From assembly GCF_000150275.1 (NCBI RefSeq), contig NW_002060944.1, positions 8,321,360 to 8,385,359 on the forward strand: a stretch of DNA of 64,000 bases, written 5' to 3'. The notes beneath the pieces were generated by a model, which worked only from the letters and a program-made list of their open reading frames with translations, searched no databases and had not been told where the DNA came from. The stretch comes from Trichoplax adhaerens. Taxonomy: Eukaryota; Animalia; Placozoa. How positions within the stretch are numbered: the stretch's first letter is position 1; each line of letters starts with the position of its first letter. Shown here piece after piece: positions 28,301 through 43,528 of the stretch. The translations under genes and the position numbers were made by a program.

Positions 28301-30270
28301 GGTACTCGATTGGATATAAATCCAAATAATAATCTATCAAGATCAGATATTAAGTAAACGCGCACTTAGGAAATATGTAATACATGAAATACAATCCGGA
28401 GAAATCTTAGTGTAAAATACTTTCAATAGTCACTATAAGTAAGGATAAACGTTCATAGTATTCATACTATCGAAGATTCAAATTATTACTCTGTTAACAT
28501 TAAAAAGCCTCAATTTAATGGTATAATATTGTCCATCTATGATCATGGTTACAAAATGTTTAAAAAATTAAGACTTCAGAATAACAACAAATTCATTTAG
28601 GCGTGTATTATCGTATTAGATGCGGGTATAGCTAACAAGTGTAAAATGATTACACAGATAAAGAATATAGTAATTGCCCTATGTTGCAAAGCGTCTATGT
28701 TTTAGTTTAATATAGACTATTAACCAAATAGCAAAAAAATGAAAGCCCAATATCGCTTGTAAACTATTACTCAAAGTTTAAAGTTAATAATGAAACGATT
28801 CATTTGCTTTACTGATACGGTACCGGTGGCTGATATTCGTAATTATCAAGCAGCCACTAGCGAATATGTCCTGCGATGTAATTCTGAATGTATACTGCAA
28901 TCTGCTGTTCGATTTCTAAGTTAAAAATGAAATCCTAAAACTCATGTTCGGTTTAGATTAGAGCATTTTATCTTTACATTATTTGCTGATCTATTCACTG
29001 CAATGATTAATTCATAACGGATAAAAAATTTTCATTTGTATAACCTAGTTGTATACGATTTAAGAGGCATACCAAGGATAAGAGGAAAACTTTAATCTAG
29101 AACGAGAATATCGATATCGCTCTAAAGTAATGAATCCTGTGATATTAAGAAGCATTTGAAACTTTTATCACAAATTTAATCTTTTACTGTATATCAAACA
29201 TATTTTAAATTTCTTGCACAAGTTTCTTTACAATGTCTGGATAAACACAAATGTAGTATACAACTTTACTCTATATTAAAGCCTAATTAGAGATATATCA
29301 CTGATAGCAAAAGAATGAAAACGATAAGGTATTTTTACTTTTAAGATGCCGTAATTAGTTGAAAATTATAGAAAGAATTGTGCTATTTTTTAAGTAACTG
29401 GCTATAAAGTTATGAATTCAATGTCGGTCCAAAGATACTTTTAGCTGATCTATTTAGAAGGAAACATAAAAGATAACTATTAAGAAGGTTTCATGAATTG
29501 TACTTATCAAGCTGCTACTCACTGATATAGTCGACATCTTAAAAATATCTGAAACCATAATGCAACTATGCTAAAATCAATTTTTGATACCCAATGTTTC
29601 AAGAAATTACCCGTAGATTAGATATAATCTTCGTAAGCCTCGTAGCAAAGCTTGCAATGAATCAATTTAATTTGATCAATTTTAACTGTAGGATTACGTT
29701 CCAATTCGAAAAGATGCTTTAAGGATGAGAAAGGCAACAAAAACAATTGTTGAATTTACCACCACAATTAATAAAATCCCATTTGTCTTTATTGACGTTG
29801 GTGGGCAAAGATCTCAAAGGCGCAAGTGGTTACAATGTTTCGAATCTATTACTGCCATTTTATTCTTAGCAGCAGCTAGCGATTATAATCAAGTTTCACT
29901 AGAAGATAGAAAAACTAATCGCCTACTGGAATCATTAGAAATATTCGGTGCCATAGTCAACCATGAGCTCTTAGCTAAAGCTTCTAAAATCTTATTTTTA
30001 AATAAGATTGATTTACTGGAGGAAAGGTTAACCATAAGCAATATCAAAAATTTCTTTTCTGCATTCAATGGGGATGAAAATGATTTAACAACCGTTAAAG
30101 AATTTATATTGCAGCTTTTTTCCAACAAGATGGAAGCCAATAATGACAATGATAAATCATTATATCATCATTATACTATCGCTACGGATACTGAAAATAT
30201 TAAGGTGGTATTCCGTGATGTAAAACAGACCATTTTACAAGAACGATTGGGAAGCTTGTTACTACACTAA
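25382..30270 (+). CDS. Second, divergent G12/13-class G-alpha, 363 aa; exons 25382-25843, 27987-28037, 29692-30270
   Basis: Same 3-exon structure and 51-nt middle exon as the upstream paralog. Motifs GASECGKST, RMRKAT, DVGGQRSQRRKW, NKID and TIATDT; spliced ORF is intact. Confidence 0.92.
26699..27077. repeat. Old ~200-bp tandem duplication (2 diverged copies) in intron 1 of the second G-alpha
   Basis: Shared anchors GGCTTTCG, ATCAAAGTATTA, ATTCAGG, CTCTGATTTT, ATTATCAAGGA and TTATAGAT recur at a ~200 bp offset. Confidence 0.8.
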
Positions 30271-33864: not shown

Positions 33865-36619
33865 ATGCCTAACTTCTTTTTGGTAGCTGGAGCTACACAG
33901 TTATCAGTAGCGTTGTTAAACGTTATCATACCAGCCGTTGCATGGTTAACAACAGGAATTATATCAGCTACTACGGTTCCTGCTACATATTTTTTGGGTC
34001 CAGGTGTGGTTGGCATTACCGTAAGTACAGTATACATTTCTTAATCAGTATTCTACAACGGAGATATTTGAAAAAATTTAGTCATAAATTGCTTGATACA
34101 CATTTACAATAATCATATCTACGGATATAGCCTGATTAATGCATATACCAGCTTTTATAACAAACTTGAATAGTTTGAACAAAGCAGGTAATATTAAAAC
34201 TATTTTATTTTTTTTTCACTAAAAATATTCAATTAAAATATACTGGTATTTAGACGCAGTAGTTAAGTTAAAAGACATAAAATTGAAGATTTACTACACA
34301 GTCGGTACGTTATTAACAGTAGTTTCATTTCTGTGATCTAGTTTAAGTGCGATAAATGCGGTAATTAATAAGATGTTATTAACCACAGTGGATATTCTAT
34401 GATCAACATTTACTTCTGTTCAAGTTATTGTAAACATTGATCCATTTAATACGTTATCGCGATATTTCTGTTTTCTTTAAAGCTCGCTACTTCGGCCTTT
34501 TCATGCTTTATGGCAAGAAATAAAGCACTTGATACAGTGGTAGGTTTCTTTTATTGTATGTAACACTATAGAATATAAAAACGTTAAAGAGTCGCAAAGA
34601 TAATCTTAGACTAGTTAATATATTTAGCGTCTCAAATGTTTTGTAATATTTCATTAATCTGTCGCTTGTACTGTCGTTAAGCAGCACTACTACTATGTAA
34701 AATTTATTATGCAAAATTAGCAATTTTGCATAATAGTGCATAATTATTATCTTAATAGTTATAATTGAAAGTGGTTACTTATGCTGTAAATATATCAAGT
34801 TACAATCACCGTAAAGAAATTTTGATTTTTTCTATTTGGCTGTGATATCTACGCTTACATTGACATCAATGCAATCTCAAATAGTAATAATAATTTTATT
34901 TACTTTTAGGTTGCAGGCATTTATGTTTTTTCACTACTTGCTACAACATATTCTATTAGCAGTATTTTAATGTTTATTAGTGTTATAGTACGGTTGGCTA
35001 CTTCAAATCTATTAAATACTGCTGTTGGAGCTTTGATTTTCACCTTGGTTACCATCGCTATTTTATGTGCATCTATGGGTGTTGCTATATGGGTCATTTA
35101 CACAGCAAGAAAAATGTTACTCAAATCTGACTCTGTACAATCAGTTGACAATCCTGATTCCCCGCCGACCGTAGCTGAGCCAACAAACTGTTTAACAGAT
35201 AGGACATTGGCCATATTAGAAATGTCAGCCGGTAACTTACTTGTAATAACCCCGGGAGTAGCAATATTCTTCCCATCTATTCAAAGACTGTATTGTGTGT
35301 TACCGCTATATGCTGGATCATTGGTAAATAAGTAATTGTGGATTACCACTTAAAAATTGCATTGGATTAGCTTATAAACAAGTTATGAATGTACCACTCT
35401 GATTCCTTTTTCAATCATTTTGTTTACTAATGACAGCTGATTGCTTCTGGAATGATGGGATATGATTATACAACTAAGAAAAGATATGCTCTTGTAAGTA
35501 GCAAATACATTGACGATTGCTACACATTGGTATCATGATCAACCTTACAGTAAAATATTATGCTTATTCATCTTTATATCAAATGCATTTTGTAGATGTT
35601 GTGGTCGTTTGTTATGACTCGATTAAGCCTGCTATTAACTACTGTAGCTATCGCTGGAACTGGATTCTATTTGGGCATCACTGTTGGAAGTGGTTCTACA
35701 GCTCCTACTAATTTAGCTCTTATTTCATTAATTCTGTTGGTTAGCATTTATGGCTTTATAATATCTATTGTATCGTTGGTTGTTACACGTAAGAGACTTG
35801 GGATAGTTTGCAGTTGTAACTTTAATGTCAAAGATATGGAGTTTATATTTGGTGTGACAATGGTGGTATTAGGAGTAGTATATGCTATTGTAGCAGCGGT
35901 TGGATTAGTTTTGTTTGCAGCTCGCTATTTTACAATTGTTGGATTTTTCGTTGCATGCGTGGTAAGTGTTAATCATGGTAGTAAGTAAAATATACATATT
36001 GAAATTTACCCTACTAAATTAATTTCATTTCATAACGGGCTATCGTTCAAATATTTAGTAATTAATTTTGTGTTACGATCATCTACGTATATAGTCTAAT
36101 TGCAATTTGCTTATTATGTCATGAAATAGTTGCTGTTAAATGGAGAGTTAGGTATGGACTCTAGGGACGTTAAACATTTTGTAAGTACTGCCTTTCGATA
36201 TTTCTATTACGAATTGGATCGTTAATGTCGCATAATTACCAAAATTATTTAGGCAGTCTGCTGTAAATTGGTGTTCATTTTGTATTCGTAAATTGCGTAA
36301 TGTAAAATTATCATGATATAAACGATACTTTTAATTTTTGTCATTGTACATTTAGGAAATTTCATTTGTTGTGAGATCAGTCTTGTCTGCCAGCTTTTCC
36401 GTTGAATGTGCAGTATTGACAATTGTGGAGTTTATTGCCTATTTGCGTTTAAATCCATCTTCCGGCCTTCTAGTACGCGGAGTTGCTATGATGGCTACAA
36501 TTCTTGTATTTAATATAGCCACATTTGGTGTAGCAGTAGCGGCTACCGTGAAAACAGGCAGAAAACATCAATTGTGCGGTATTTCTTCCCAGACTGGCCC
36601 ATCTGAAGCTGAATCATAA
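33865..36619 (+). CDS. 454-aa polytopic membrane protein with three tandem MS4A/CD20-like 4-TM modules; exons 33865-34020, 34483-34539, 34910-35323, 35437-35493, 35596-35961, 36130-36180, 36356-36619
   Basis: All six introns are GT-AG phase 0 and the spliced ORF is open, with ~12 hydrophobic segments. Each module has a 57/57/51-nt exon after TM2, like the CD20 YIISGSLLAATEKNSRKCL exon. Confidence 0.75.
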
Positions 36620-37638: not shown

Positions 37639-38117
37639 CCGTGCTCTAGTGACCAGTATTACATCAAATTTCATCATTTCAATGTTCATTCATGTAATCA
37701 TGACTATACTGGTATTGTACTGTACTGTATATAAGTCAAGGTAAATGACCAATTTCAATTACAACCTGTCAAGTCTCAAGTTGCAGCATCAGTCAACTGT
37801 TTTACTACACCTGATCAAGGCAATATCAACCGCAGTACGGCAGTAGCACTCATTACTTTCATATACACTAGTGTTTGCAATTGTTGATCATCTAGTGCAC
37901 TCCCTACCTCGGTCGACCAGCACCAATAGCCTTTGGTAGTAAAGGTACTCATTGAATGACAGTCTCTTGCTGCTGCAGCAAAGTCAGTATCAAGATCGAT
38001 TGAAACGCCCAACGTTGACTGCTGACCAGTGGATTATTTTCATTGGATGAAGTGACCTGACCCACCAAAGGGTTGACCACACTCATCCGTCTCTCTCCAC
38101 AGCCAATAGGACACAGT

Positions 38118-40084
38118 ATGAAAATTGCAAGTTTCATCAACGGTGCTGAAGCATCAGCGGACGACAGTCAACACCGACGTTACATTGACAGCGACGTCAT
38201 GAAAGCCGATGATGATCAACAACATGGTGGCAGGGTAAGACCTTACCAGATTATTATGTTATGTTGTGCGTATACAGGAACAGAACTTGCTTATGGTGTT
38301 CAAGCGGCTTATGTTACTCCAATCTTAGCTGGTTTAGGAATTCCATTACGCTATTTAACGTTAGCTTGGGCCATTAGCCCAATACTAGGGTTATTGACGC
38401 AGCCAGTGATAGGATCATGGTCGGATTCGTGTACATGTCCATGGGGGAGACGACGGCCATTCATGGTTGCCATGGCTATTGGTATCTTGATCGGTCTATT
38501 AGCAACAGCGTTTGGTAAAGACTTGGGCTTATTAGTGTCGTCCAATAGTTTATCCTTTGCAATCGCCTTCACTTTGATTGGCAACGGGATATTAGATTAT
38601 TCATTAGATTCATCAGGTGTACCTTGTCGTGCTTACCTCTTTGATGTAACTCCGCAAAATCAGGAGCACAAGTTTCAAAGATTGGCTGCTATTTTTGCCT
38701 CTGTTGGTGCTATTGCTGGCTATTTAATATGTGGAATTGAATGGAATTTCGCCTTTGGTCAAGTTATCTTTGATCAAGCTCATTCAGTATTCATCTTAAC
38801 CGCAGTCTTGGTTTGTTTGTTTTATATTGTATCTTTATTCAGTGTCAAGGAAGTCCCATTTATACAAACACAACAACATCGACTCGATGCTGCAACCGGA
38901 AGCAAGGAAATCCAATTGCAGGATACTAGCCAACATGCCCAATCGCAACATTCAAATGATATTGTCATCCATGAAGACCAAACTGGTAGAGAAATACAAG
39001 CCAATCCTAGTCGTTCACATATAAAAGCAGTCTTTTATGCTGTTACAAAAATGCCAAGAGAATTTGCCATTTTATGCTTATTAGACTCCATAGCATGGAT
39101 AGGTTATGTTTGTTTTAGTGTATTTTATACCGATTTCGTTGGAATCGAAGTATTCAAGGGCAATCCCACTGCACCATTGAATTCTACTGACTATTTACTC
39201 TATCAGAGAGGTGTTAAAATTGGAAGTTGGGGATTACTCGGTCAATCTGCTTTTGGAGGAGCATTTGCCTTGTGTCTGGAGAGGATATGTAGAGTGACTG
39301 GTATGATTAGTATAATTTGAATCATTTTCAAATTTTTAACGAGCGATACAATCAATATATGGCTGTAGATTGAAAAGTTAAGCCAACTGTTTGTTATATA
39401 TACTGATATTCGTGTACATAAACTTTTAGGAAGTCGTTTAATAATGATTGGCGGATTCTCATTGGTGGGATTATTATTATTTATTATGGCTTTTGTTAAA
39501 GTTTTACCATTTGTCATTGCTGCTGGTACATTGACTGGTATCGTTTTTGCTATCATCTATTCTATACCCTTTGGTCTAGTTGGACAATATCATGCAGCTT
39601 TTAAGGTAAATGACATAACAACTCGTACACTATATGCTGTGCCCTAATTCTATCGATTGTAACGAGCTTAGAATAAACTACTATGATAAAAATTTAGATG
39701 GATTGACAATCTTATTGGGATGGAATACTATTTTATAGATGTGTATGAAATAATATGTACAGTATGACGTTAACTATTCTTTGTCAAATTAAATTGTAGG
39801 ATGATCCTCGATGGAGTACCAGGGGTTTTGGTATCGATTCTGCTATCTTAAATAGTTGTATGTATGCTGGACAATTAACGGTATCATTTTGTGTTGGCGC
39901 TATAGTCGAAGCAAGTGGTACTAGAGATGCTGCAGCGATGACGATGGGTGGATGCCTACTGACATGTGCTTTTCTATCCATATTTGTTGTTGAGCCACAG
40001 ACAAAGCCATCACAAGTTGAACTCAATGATTTCACCGCCAATGAAAATAGGAACAATGATTGCACCACTGTTGGTGTAGTTTAG
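38118..40084 (+). CDS. SLC45 family MFS transporter, copy A; exons 38118-39300, 39430-39605, 39800-40084
   Basis: Motifs AYVTPIL, SPILGLLTQPVIGSWSD.C..WGRRRPF, LD..D..PCRAYL.D, YTDFVG..VF.GNP.A and Y.RGVK.GSWGL. Confidence 0.93.
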
Positions 40085-41733: not shown

Positions 41734-43528
41734 ATGGGTGCCGATGAAAATTGGAATGGAAATAACCCTCAGGAGAAAATGTTCAGTCCAGAAAATGATC
41801 ATCACCCGATCAAAGCTAACGCTAAACCTTATCAAATTGTCATGCTGTGTAGTTTTTCAGTGGCTATTGGAATAGGCTATAGTGCCCAATCTGCTTATGT
41901 AACACCTATTTTAGCTGAATTAGGCATGCCTGTACGTTACTTGACTTATGTTTGGAGTTTCAGCCCTATCGTTGGTCTGATTACCCAACCTTTTATTGGA
42001 TCCATGTCAGACGGATGCACCTCAAGATGGGGTAGAAGGCGACCATTTATTTTAGCTTTTGCTATCGGCACTTTGATTGGTCTACTACTACTAGGCTTCG
42101 GTAAAGATATCGGATTAGCTATATTGCCCGGTAAGACAAGCGTAGCAATCGCTTTAGTTCTTATAGGCAATGGAATTCTTGATTATAGTTCAGATGCAAG
42201 TCAAAGCCCAGCTCGAGCCTATCTATGCGATGTAACACCAGAAGGGCAAGAACAACGAGCTCATAGAATCTGTACTATTTTAATGGGTTTAGCCAATGTT
42301 GTTGGTTTTTGTATCTGTGCTATCGATTGGGATGAGTTATTTACGCGCGATGATGGAACTGTTCCGATAACATCCGTTCAATTTGTTTTCCTTCTTAGTG
42401 GCATCTTGTCTACCATAGCCTTTATAGTTTGCATATTTAGTGTTCGCGAAATTCCTTTATCAAAAGTCGACAAGCAAAAGCAGATAAAAAGGGAACAAGA
42501 CATTGCAGATAATCGACCTACTGCACAGGATAATGACGTCAAAGTCATTACTGAAAACGAAGAGAATGACTGTAATGAGCAACCCGTTTCTTGCTTACGT
42601 TCTGTTTATAATGGATTTGTCCAATTGCCTAAGGAATTACTGGTTTTAGTCATTATGAATACACTATCATGGACTGGTTTCATGACTTTTATTCTTATCT
42701 ACACCGATTATATTGGTATCGTGATCTATAATGGAGATCCAACCGCTGCAGTTAATACTACTGAGTACGCATTATATACTGCTGGTGTGAAGACAGGTAG
42801 TTGGGCTCTTGTTGGTTATGCTGCTATGACTGGAGTTTATGCATTATCTCTTGAAATTATCGAAAGATACGTTAGTAAGTATTCCAAGTCAGAATAAAAA
42901 TTTTAAATATTATGATCAGTAGAATAAACATCTTATACTCATAAATATGAAATCTTTTTTTATAGGTGTGCGTATTCTGTTACTGTTGGGATACGGAGGT
43001 GTCGGTGGTCTAATAATTTTAATGTCTCAAATAAATTCTCTTCCATTAGCTGTAACTATCAGTTGTAGTCTAGGTATCAGTTTTGCTACAATGTTTTCCA
43101 TACCGTATGCCTTAGTAGGCGAATATCATGTTTATTTCAAGGTCGGTTAGCGTACTAGTGACTGATATATACAATTTGTTAATATACTGTATTTCAATGC
43201 AGCGGTATCATAAAAATACCTTAACTGATTACATGATATTGTATTACAGAATGATCCACGATGGAAAAGTAGAGGCTTTGGTTTTGATTCAGCTATGCTA
43301 AATTCTTGCATTTACGTCGCTCAATTAATCGTTGCATTCGGCGTAGGTGCTATTATTGAGGCTGCTGGAAGTAGAAATGCCGCCATTTTATTTAGTGGAA
43401 TTTGCTATGTAGCTAGCGGATTAACGTCAATAGCAGTAAGTGTGTTACCAAAATCCGATTGCGACGAGGCAGAAAGTGAACCAAAATCACCAAAGCTAAA
43501 AGTTATGCAACAAGTAACATCTATTTAG
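41734..43528 (+). CDS. SLC45 family transporter, copy B; exons 41734-42874, 42966-43141, 43250-43528
   Basis: Motifs GSMSDGCTSRWGRRRPF and YTDYIG..IYNGDP; intact spliced ORF ending QQVTSI. Confidence 0.93.

Follow-up and report, generated by a model that had tools for sequence, protein, structure and literature searches.

A conserved placozoan gene that probably joins three highly diverged CD20/MS4A-like units in one predicted 12-helix protein

Introduction

The locus described here raises the question of whether three four-helix units of the CD20/MS4A type can be carried, in a fixed order, by a single polypeptide, and in an animal that branched off very early. CD20/MS4A proteins are medically important, and both their basic biochemical role and their working oligomeric state are debated. 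A survey from 2010 reportedly concluded that invertebrates are without the CD20/MS4A family. The genome of Trichoplax adhaerens appears to point the opposite way, with ordinary CD20-like genes sharing a common intron plan in a very early-branching animal and, beside them, an old, conserved family whose members carry three different units on a single chain, always in the same order. The gene at the centre of this work lies in a window of 64,000 nucleotides (the whole stretch of DNA that was analysed, to which all positions refer). An earlier note, made from the letters of the window, had read it as a triple CD20-like protein produced by duplication within a gene.

Results

The gene is modelled as seven exons at 33865-36619 (+), which yield 454 codons and a stop. 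All seven exons are in phase 0 and have lengths divisible by three, and all introns are GT..AG. The coordinates and peptides in the earlier note all hold, including its small exons of 57, 57 and 51 nt. The parts of the gene are as follows.

33865..34020, + strand: exon 1, start codon and TM1-TM2 of unit 1 (52 aa)
34483..34539, + strand: exon 2, 57 nt, phase 0, TM2 end and basic cytoplasmic loop of unit 1
34910..35323, + strand: exon 3 (fused), TM3-TM4 of unit 1, cytoplasmic linker and TM1-TM2 of unit 2 (138 aa)
35102..35203, + strand: linker of units 1/2, within exon 3, conserved
35437..35493, + strand: exon 4, 57 nt, phase 0, TM2 end and basic loop of unit 2, starting L-I-A-S-G
35596..35961, + strand: exon 5 (fused), TM3-TM4 of unit 2, linker with a C-x-C motif and TM1-TM2 of unit 3 (122 aa)
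35785..35841, + strand: linker of units 2/3, within exon 5
36130..36180, + strand: exon 6, 51 nt, phase 0, TM2 end and loop of unit 3, starting L-L-L-N-G-E-L-G
36356..36619, + strand: exon 7, TM3-TM4 of unit 3, basic C-terminal tail and stop (87 aa)

Hydropathy gives ~12 hydrophobic helices, in three successive sets of a two-TM part, a small exon and a second two-TM part, in agreement with the three four-TM modules that had been claimed. Basic residues are located in the three small-exon loops, in both linkers and in the C-terminal tail; loops on the outer side are very short. By the positive-inside rule, each unit would have four TM helices, with cytoplasmic N and C termini and a short basic TM2-TM3 loop. 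Exon 1 carries G-A-T-Q in TM1 and ends, directly before the intron, with Y-x3-P-x3-G-x2, in register with the corresponding exon end of the CD20-like genes described below. Among 13 phase-0 AG..GT candidates in its intron, exon 2 is the sole one with a strong pyrimidine tract (12/15). Direct similarity among the units is weak, and the repeat is recognized mainly from the exon plan and from comparison with paralogues; exon 6 does resemble exon 4 of the same gene (z 4.6).

Exons 3-7, the small exons 4 and 6 included, are kept in L002, L003 and L004, three contigs of other placozoan-like samples, where changes fall mostly at third codon positions, splice sites are retained and intron identity is 48-54%. 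Exon 4 retains 17-18 of its 19 residues in these contigs, and its mismatches with L002 are distributed 0/2/8 over the three codon positions; for exon 6 the distribution is 5/1/9, with 14/17 residues kept. Mismatches in the linker of units 1/2 are distributed 7/2/16 and 4/4/11, with neither stop nor indel in the orthologues, and those in the gap-free linker of units 2/3 are distributed 2/2/11-12. Charged residues within helices are conserved as well, namely E (TM1) and R (TM3) in unit 2 and both R and E in TM3 of unit 3. These patterns indicate that exons 3-7, with both linkers, are under purifying selection, and mark the locus as a protein-coding gene of a placozoan-type genome, conserved across placozoan lineages. 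Exons 3 and 5 contain the unit junctions and read straight through them without stops. Because both inter-unit linkers are conserved coding sequence, the three units are predicted to form one polypeptide from one gene, as the earlier note had proposed.

When exons 1, 3, 5 and 7 were searched singly against their own genome, each matched only itself, so that the gene is single copy at the sequence level. Paralogues surfaced only via a CD20-like profile, and then via the exons of one of them (T2) together with profiles. Full seven-exon, all-phase-0 models on the same plan were obtained for T2 (L027, 461 aa) and T3 (L038, 483 aa), exons 2-6 of the same plan were modelled for T5 (L043), and T4 (L031) is probably a further triple paralogue. 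By these models, the genome holds at least three more genes of the same triple plan. T2, T3, T5 and probably T4 share with the 454-aa gene the all-phase-0 plan, the fused exons 3 and 5 with identical ends, small exons of 57-60 nt and a unit-by-unit positional correspondence; they differ from it in showing only ~20-30% identity with it and in an exon 6 of 57 nt instead of 51 nt.

The likeness to these paralogues is specific to position. Exon 3 matches exon 3 of T5 end to end (BLASTP E 1e-4), exon 5 matches exon 5 of T3 (BLASTP E 0.006) and, over 101 columns, T2 and T3 together (hhalign E 3.2e-4), and exon 2 has 6/19 residues in common with exon 2 of T3 in an ungapped alignment. Exon 6 resembles its counterparts in T2 and T3, the motif L-T-I-V-E-F occurs in exon 7 of all three genes, and the E in TM3 of unit 3 is retained in T2 and T3. 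When the units were scored against those of T2 and T3, same-position pairs scored best, with diagonal values of 44, 109 and 76, none of which was reached in more than 1 of 2000 shuffles. Each unit thus appears nearer to its positional counterparts in T2 and T3 than to its own neighbours, and the positions are not interchangeable, which argues for a triple plan that is old and position-specific. The proposed origin by duplication is supported by these paralogues of the same plan, with their position-by-position match, and would be an old event.

The genome also contains CD20-like single-unit genes, and in the five found (X, Y, Z, L020 and L023) the TM1-TM2 exon ends at the same motif position. 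Three of them were modelled, X (L005), Y (L007+L013) and Z (L014), and in all three this exon is followed by a second exon of 57 nt, in phase 0, and by a third that carries TM3-TM4. Their TM1-TM2 exons match positions 1-40 of Pfam PF04103 with 18.7-22 bits; CD20 is the sole Pfam family match for X and Y and the best for Z, and a profile of the X, Y and Z exons matched only human CD20 in the PDB. The 454-aa gene follows the same plan, with its small exons at the same places. The earlier note had ascribed a 19-aa exon at this position to MS4A/CD20 genes in general; it is present in 3/3 of the CD20-like genes modelled here, which is the scope of the check, and a search of the literature on the vertebrate MS4A exon plan found nothing usable.

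We compared the units with X, Y and Z in an anchored test, with ungapped alignments fixed at the exon borders and 2000 shuffles that preserve residue class. Unit 1 scored z 4.1 (0/2000) and unit 2 z 3.3 (4/2000), values to be read with the caveat that similarity between transmembrane sequences is inflated; both were stable across six window sizes. A register shift of 1-8 residues destroyed the score, and the comparison of X with Z behaved in the same way. Exon 4 likewise peaked at register 0 against the CD20-like small exons, so that units 1 and 2 match X, Y and Z in exact exon-boundary register at both introns. A profile of the fused exon 3 of the triple family matched the TM1-TM2 profile of the five CD20-like genes with an hhalign E of 5.8e-4, the alignment reaching to 2 residues from both exon ends. 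As possible counterparts of the motifs sought (L-G-x-x-Q...G in TM1 of CD20 and P-x-W-x-G in its TM2), G-A-T-Q and P-x3-G are seen in unit 1 and A-I-L-E-M-x-A-G and P-L-Y-A-G in unit 2; neither motif is present in unit 3. The assignment of the modules to a CD20/MS4A-like type is upheld by exon plan and boundary-anchored similarity.

Several other comparisons gave no such signal. The expectation that the Pfam CD20 profile (PF04103) would recognize the modules was not borne out: exons 1, 3, 5 and 7, searched singly, gave no CD20 match even at E 10, whereas X, Y and Z match with one exon, and no exon of T2, T3, T4 or T5 matched CD20 in Pfam. The Pfam matches that exons 1, 3, 5 and 7 did give, among them DUF3278 and glycophorin, were rejected as noise. 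PDB sequence searches with exon 1 and with the exon-3 profile returned chance matches and did not find CD20. Small-profile hhalign of the gene's own exons directly against X, Y and Z gave E 0.05-0.4 at a probability of about 1%, gapped alignments of whole TM1-TM2 parts were mostly not significant, unit 3 alone was not significant in the anchored test (z 1.3), and the T2 units did not pass that test against X, Y and Z.

Beyond this genome, a full HMMER profile search with exon 3 among 1.84 billion representative proteins returned the placozoan orthologue as its only genuine match; another match, P0003, was rejected as a junk translation of a tandem repeat. A word-index protein search retrieved two orthologue fragments with exon 3 and nothing with exon 1, and a scan of JGI metagenomes gave no relative. 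A 464-aa open frame matched by one profile (L042, profile A7) proved to be an unrelated, intronless GPCR of the rhodopsin type. A literature search on MS4A in Trichoplax turned up no relevant paper.

Discussion

We consider it likely, from sequence comparisons, that this locus is a single gene for a 454-residue, 12-helix protein of three very diverged CD20/MS4A-like units, formed by triplication and perhaps working as an adaptor. The ancestral unit would have consisted of a TM1-TM2 exon, a phase-0 exon of ~57 nt with the TM2 end and a basic cytoplasmic loop, and a TM3-TM4 exon, and an in-frame fusion would have joined the last exon of one unit with the first exon of the unit after it. The fused exons may be the scar of an intragenic tandem duplication, or of unequal crossing-over with breakpoints inside those exons. 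MS4A bundles otherwise meet as separate subunits; here the chain itself would set the order and number of three non-identical CD20-type four-helix bundles, and, by the positive-inside pattern, the N and C termini would lie on the cytoplasmic side together with the three basic loops and the pair of conserved linkers. We infer that the protein is most likely a non-enzymatic membrane adaptor or organizer like CD20 or Fc-epsilon-RI beta, and not a ligand-binding receptor or a transporter.

The unit resembles PF04103 proteins (CD20/MS4A, TMEM176) and X, Y and Z in its four TM helices with both ends predicted to lie inside, in a putative TM1 motif G-A-x-Q/E...G, in the aromatic-x-G-x-x at the TM2 end immediately before a phase-0 intron, in the 57-nt exon for the TM2 end and basic loop followed by a TM3-TM4 exon, and in membrane-adjacent cysteines after TM4. 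The 454-aa gene differs from them in having three units instead of one, in its very short outer loops and in having no exon that is recognized at the Pfam level, and its unit 3 retains neither the TM1 nor the TM2 motif.

In chicken, opossum and platypus, tandem MS4A polypeptides of 2 and 6 units have been described, which the authors took as support for MS4A oligomerisation (Zuccolo et al., 2010, PMC2826416). Like the placozoan gene, these vertebrate genes have several MS4A-type four-TM units following one another within a single open reading frame. They have 2 or 6 units, each readily recognized as MS4A by PSI-BLAST, and are genomic predictions only, whereas the placozoan gene, likewise known from genome sequence, has three units that have diverged beyond exon-by-exon Pfam detection, in an order that is conserved in at least three paralogues (T2, T3 and the 454-aa gene). 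The earlier note's suggestion that no 12-TM triple MS4A had been described was too strong, given the vertebrate tandem proteins and the further triple genes of this genome. Tandem MS4A proteins are already known, and what is seen here would be a three-unit placozoan version with a fixed unit order.

Other readings of the locus differ in what they would change. The triple genes might form a placozoan-only family of 3 x 4-TM repeats without CD20/MS4A descent, their exon plan and motifs being convergent or generic features of hydrophobic hairpins. The lack of a Pfam CD20 match for the exons of the 454-aa gene, T2, T3, T4 and T5, a search among 1.84 billion proteins that reached the orthologue only, and hhalign probabilities of at most 39% all speak for such a family, as does the warning that, where MS4A and invertebrate proteins show short similarities in TM segments, the same similarities recur in unrelated proteins (Zuccolo et al., 2010, PMC2826416). 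We nevertheless think it unlikely, given that two intron positions, their phase and the 57-nt length are identical in 3/3 modelled CD20-like genes and 2/3 units, that at both introns the highest score is the one at exactly register 0, and that the TM1-TM2 parts align end to end. An error in the gene model would cut deeper, leaving no 12-TM chain if exons 1 and 2 were foreign, if translation began internally or if the units were expressed separately. Such an error would fit the finding that no orthologous contig covers exon 1 or exon 2, and that L002 departs from the locus upstream of mid-exon 3, a break that, judging by L003, is most likely an assembly chimera. It is very improbable, however, since exon 3 begins at a conserved acceptor without ATG in all species and hence requires upstream coding exons, each unit junction falls within one open exon whose substitutions are of the coding type, and all seven exons, counterparts of exons 1 and 2 included, recur in T2 and T3.

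Twelve helices, together with the conserved intrahelical charges of units 2 and 3 (the unit 3 E also in T2 and T3), would suit a 12-TM transporter or a pore-forming channel in which the 3 x 4 layout makes a central pathway. We give this very little credence, as a family-profile match of the kind expected for 12-TM transporters (MFS and others) is absent from the Pfam results, the repeat is 3 x 4 and neither 6+6 nor 5+5, and solved CD20 is a dimer of compact four-helix bundles with no evident pore. The sensor or channel role suggested in the earlier note gained no support from these results, which include very short outer loops. There is a slim chance that three non-equivalent CD20-type bundles in fixed order assemble with pseudo-threefold symmetry, leaving a central or inter-bundle pathway, and hence make an ion-conducting or ligand-gated sensor. 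Such a protein would be a sensor in an animal without neurons and a single-chain model for MS4A oligomerisation and ion conduction.

If the likely link of the triple genes to CD20 is true, the family and its gene plan would date back to near the base of animals, and the protein would be a natural, defined hetero-trimer on which bundle packing and pathway formation could be tested. Were the link false, the genes would still represent a placozoan-specific family of 12-helix proteins. With no family member adjacent to it, the 454-aa gene sits alone, a G-alpha gene lying on one side and an SLC45-like array on the other.

Structure of the triple gene

The gene lies in an AT-rich window (33% G+C) and comprises seven open segments separated by GT..AG introns, all in phase 0, which give an ORF of 454 codons plus a stop. 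A hydropathy profile of the joined exons revealed about 12 helices, laid out as three units that each consist of a two-helix part, a small exon and another two-helix part, with exons 3 and 5 each carrying the end of one unit and the start of the next in a single uninterrupted exon. All TM1 strings and small-exon peptides described in an earlier note on this DNA were present in that form. Database and family searches used single exons as queries, and later statistics were computed piece by piece. No CD20-like gene adjoins the triple gene among its neighbours in the window.

33865-36619 (+), triple gene, exons 1-7 of 156, 57, 414, 57, 366, 51 and 264 nt
29725-30270 (+), upstream neighbour, G-alpha C-terminal exon
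38073-39320 (+) and 41734-42897 (+), downstream neighbours, at least two long SLC45-like sugar-transporter-type ORFs

Coding status and conservation

A word-index protein search with exon 3 retrieved two ORF fragments (77-78% identity). Their contigs, two ENA metagenome scaffolds (L002 and L003) and one from a Logan assembly (L004), contain the orthologous locus of other placozoan-like organisms; the comparison covers exons 3-7, exons 1 and 2 lying outside these contigs. Protein identity over these exons was 62-95%, intron identity was 48-54%, and all acceptors and GTAAG-type donors were kept. Based on the mismatches by codon position, the diverged introns and the retained splice sites, both exon 4 and exon 6, the small ones, code for protein and evolve under purifying selection.

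Mismatches between the triple gene and L002 by codon position
Exon 3: 29/12/59
Exon 4: 0/2/8
Exon 5: 27/18/58
Exon 6: 5/1/9
Exon 7: 26/17/42
Linker of units 1-2: 7/2/16, gap-free
Linker of units 2-3: 2/2/11, gap-free

Both inter-unit linkers were among the best conserved stretches of the gene, and their coding-type pattern indicates that the units are read as one chain. Exon 3 starts at a conserved acceptor and is without a start codon in every species compared, and upstream coding exons are therefore needed. Exon 2 is the sole candidate in its intron with a good pyrimidine tract, and is further supported by its length of 57 nt and by 6 of 19 residues identical, without gaps, to exon 2 of the paralogous triple gene T3. 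It is very probable that the locus is a single gene encoding a single chain. Midway through exon 3, the L002 sequence gives way to an unrelated, bacterial-looking aldo-keto-reductase-like ORF (69-467, within L002:1-740); this break most likely reflects an assembly chimera, since L003, a scaffold of the same study, shows no such switch.

A family of triple-unit genes

Single-exon searches for paralogues in our own genome assembly (105.6 Mb, 1414 contigs) retrieved the gene itself only, and a HMMER search of 1.84 billion representative proteins with an exon-3 profile matched only an orthologue fragment and a second sequence, which was rejected as a repeat artefact. A weak match of an exon-3 profile on contig C1385 (L042:382-1701 (-)) was an intronless 439-aa rhodopsin-type GPCR ORF and was discarded as false. 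Searching the genome with a CD20-like exon profile led to T2, whose exons retrieved T3 and T4, and a profile of the T-gene exons retrieved T5. All four loci carry fused 'TM3-TM4 + linker + TM1-TM2' exons.

T2 (L027), C1412:9.19 Mb, 461 aa from seven phase-0 exons, of which 3 and 5 are fused and the small ones measure 57, 60 and 57 nt
T3 (L038), C1412:9.21 Mb, 13 kb from T2, seven exons, 483 aa
T4 (L031), C1409:2.38 Mb, at least one fused exon 3, the sole exon seen
T5 (L043), C1411:4.14 Mb, exons 2-6 on the same plan

The T2 locus is repeated with 99-100% protein identity on C1226 (L028/L033), a small scaffold interrupted by long runs of N, which is probably an unmerged haplotype or assembly duplicate.

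Exon 3 aligned with that of T5 from residue 3 through to the final residue in each (BLASTP E 1e-4, 26% identity), both ending in Y-A-G-S-L. Exon 5 aligned with that of T3 without gaps for 66 residues, beginning at residue 2 (E 0.006, 32% identity). Exon-5 profiles compared with hhalign gave E 3.2e-4 across 101 columns, a stretch that takes in both halves of the fused exon; invariant columns include W-S at the beginning and G/A-C two residues short of the end. We also used an anchored, ungapped test covering the 20 residues that precede the first intron, the small exon and the 25 residues that follow the second intron, with the register taken as fixed because it is set by the exon borders, and 2000 shuffles that hold residue class (hydrophobic, polar, charged) in place. 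Against T2 and T3, the top score always fell on the unit at the same position, and no more than 1 of the 2000 shuffles equalled any of these diagonal scores.

Anchored scores against T2+T3
Unit 1: same position 44; other positions 22, 17
Unit 2: same position 109; other positions 10, -1
Unit 3: same position 76; other positions -25, 20

The three-unit plan therefore predates the split of the paralogues, and the positions have stayed distinct. In all probability the triple gene belongs to a placozoan family of triple-unit genes. Within the gene itself similarity among the units is weak, and only two comparisons stand out: small exon 4 with 6 (z 4.6), and TM3-TM4 of unit 1 with that of unit 3 (z 3.1).

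Relationship to single-unit CD20-like genes

The Pfam CD20 model (PF04103), searched over the whole genome, retrieved three exons elsewhere, belonging to the single-unit CD20-like genes X, Y and Z.

X (L005), C1409:5.090 Mb
Y (L007+L013), C1409:5.095 Mb
Z (L014), C1408:3.61 Mb
Further CD20-like first exons: L020, C1411:7.35 Mb; L023, C1380:0.18 Mb

X and Y, putatively separate genes, are tandem neighbours on the same strand. The TM1-TM2 exons of the three genes matched profile positions 1-40 with 18.7-22 bits, CD20 being the sole Pfam family matched by X and by Y and the top-scoring one for Z, and a profile of these exons matched only human CD20 among all PDB chains, the match ending in P-L-W-G-G-I-M. 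In each, the TM1-TM2 exon ends in phase 0 two residues past the G of P-I-W-x-G, followed by a 57-nt, phase-0 exon (19 aa, hydrophobic then basic) and a further exon with TM3 and TM4; with L020 and L023, all five genes end this first exon two residues after W-x-G. The exon plan of X, Y and Z is that of each unit of the triple gene.

In the anchored test against X, Y and Z, unit 1 (z 4.1, 0/2000 shuffles) and unit 2 (z 3.3, 4/2000) scored significantly and unit 3 did not (z 1.3), an outcome stable over six window sizes. Identities were 14/64 for unit 1 with X and for unit 2 with Z, compared with 15/64 between X and Z. Sliding the register of either partner by 1-8 residues reduced scores of +28, +46 and +72 to values near or below zero, with the same loss between X and Z. 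Three-sequence exon profiles of the triple gene matched X, Y and Z weakly in the right register (hhalign, E 0.05-0.4), and gapped alignments of whole TM1-TM2 parts were mostly not significant. The fused-exon-3 family profile (seven sequences) matched a five-gene CD20-like profile in the TM1-TM2 part of unit 2 with E 5.8e-4, covering both helices and ending two residues short of either exon's end; with only the T-family profile, the match was on TM1 at E 0.0024. At the profile level, the TM3-TM4 part gave no match.

The earlier note had read the gene as three concatenated MS4A/CD20-like modules and named Pfam CD20 as a check on each third. Exons 1, 3, 5 and 7, searched singly, lacked CD20 and any other credible Pfam match, and no Pfam CD20 was found in the exons of the T genes. 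That reading is partly supported: it holds for the single chain, and is backed on the CD20 side by the exon plan and by units 1 and 2, but not by Pfam or unit 3. Descent from CD20-like genes is, on balance, likely.

Proposed origin, topology and role

The triple plan most likely arose by tandem duplication, applied twice, of a segment running from within the first to within the last coding exon, of which fused exons 3 and 5 would be the expected scar. Chicken, opossum and platypus are known to encode polypeptides in which 2 or 6 MS4A units follow each other in tandem, an arrangement tied to oligomerisation, and MS4A genes were reported absent from invertebrates (Zuccolo et al., PMC2826416). 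The triple gene likewise joins several units in one polypeptide, but has three, occurs in a placozoan, and is ancient, position-specific and part of a small family. Our literature search turned up no publication on placozoan MS4A-like genes.

From sequence features, we conclude that the predicted product is one chain in which three different CD20-type bundles are joined in a fixed order. The positive-inside pattern would place the short N-terminal end, the loops encoded by the three small exons, the two linkers and the basic C-terminal tail in the cytoplasm. Because the outer loops are so short (about 4-13 residues), we favour a putative role as membrane adaptor or organiser over that of a chemosensor; we saw no support for a transporter role. 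In units 1 and 2, TM1 has a conserved polar residue, Q or E, where the TM1 motif of CD20-like genes has its Q. Also conserved are an R in unit 2 TM3 and an E in unit 3 TM3, the latter shared with T2 and T3. A conserved C-x-C just past TM4 of unit 2, which also occurs in X and Y, may be a lipid-anchoring site. The linker of units 1-2 (window 35102-35203) is more conserved than its flanking helices, and its runs L-L-K-S-D-S-V and D-S/T-P-P...T-N-C-L-T-D may represent a sorting or phosphorylation motif.
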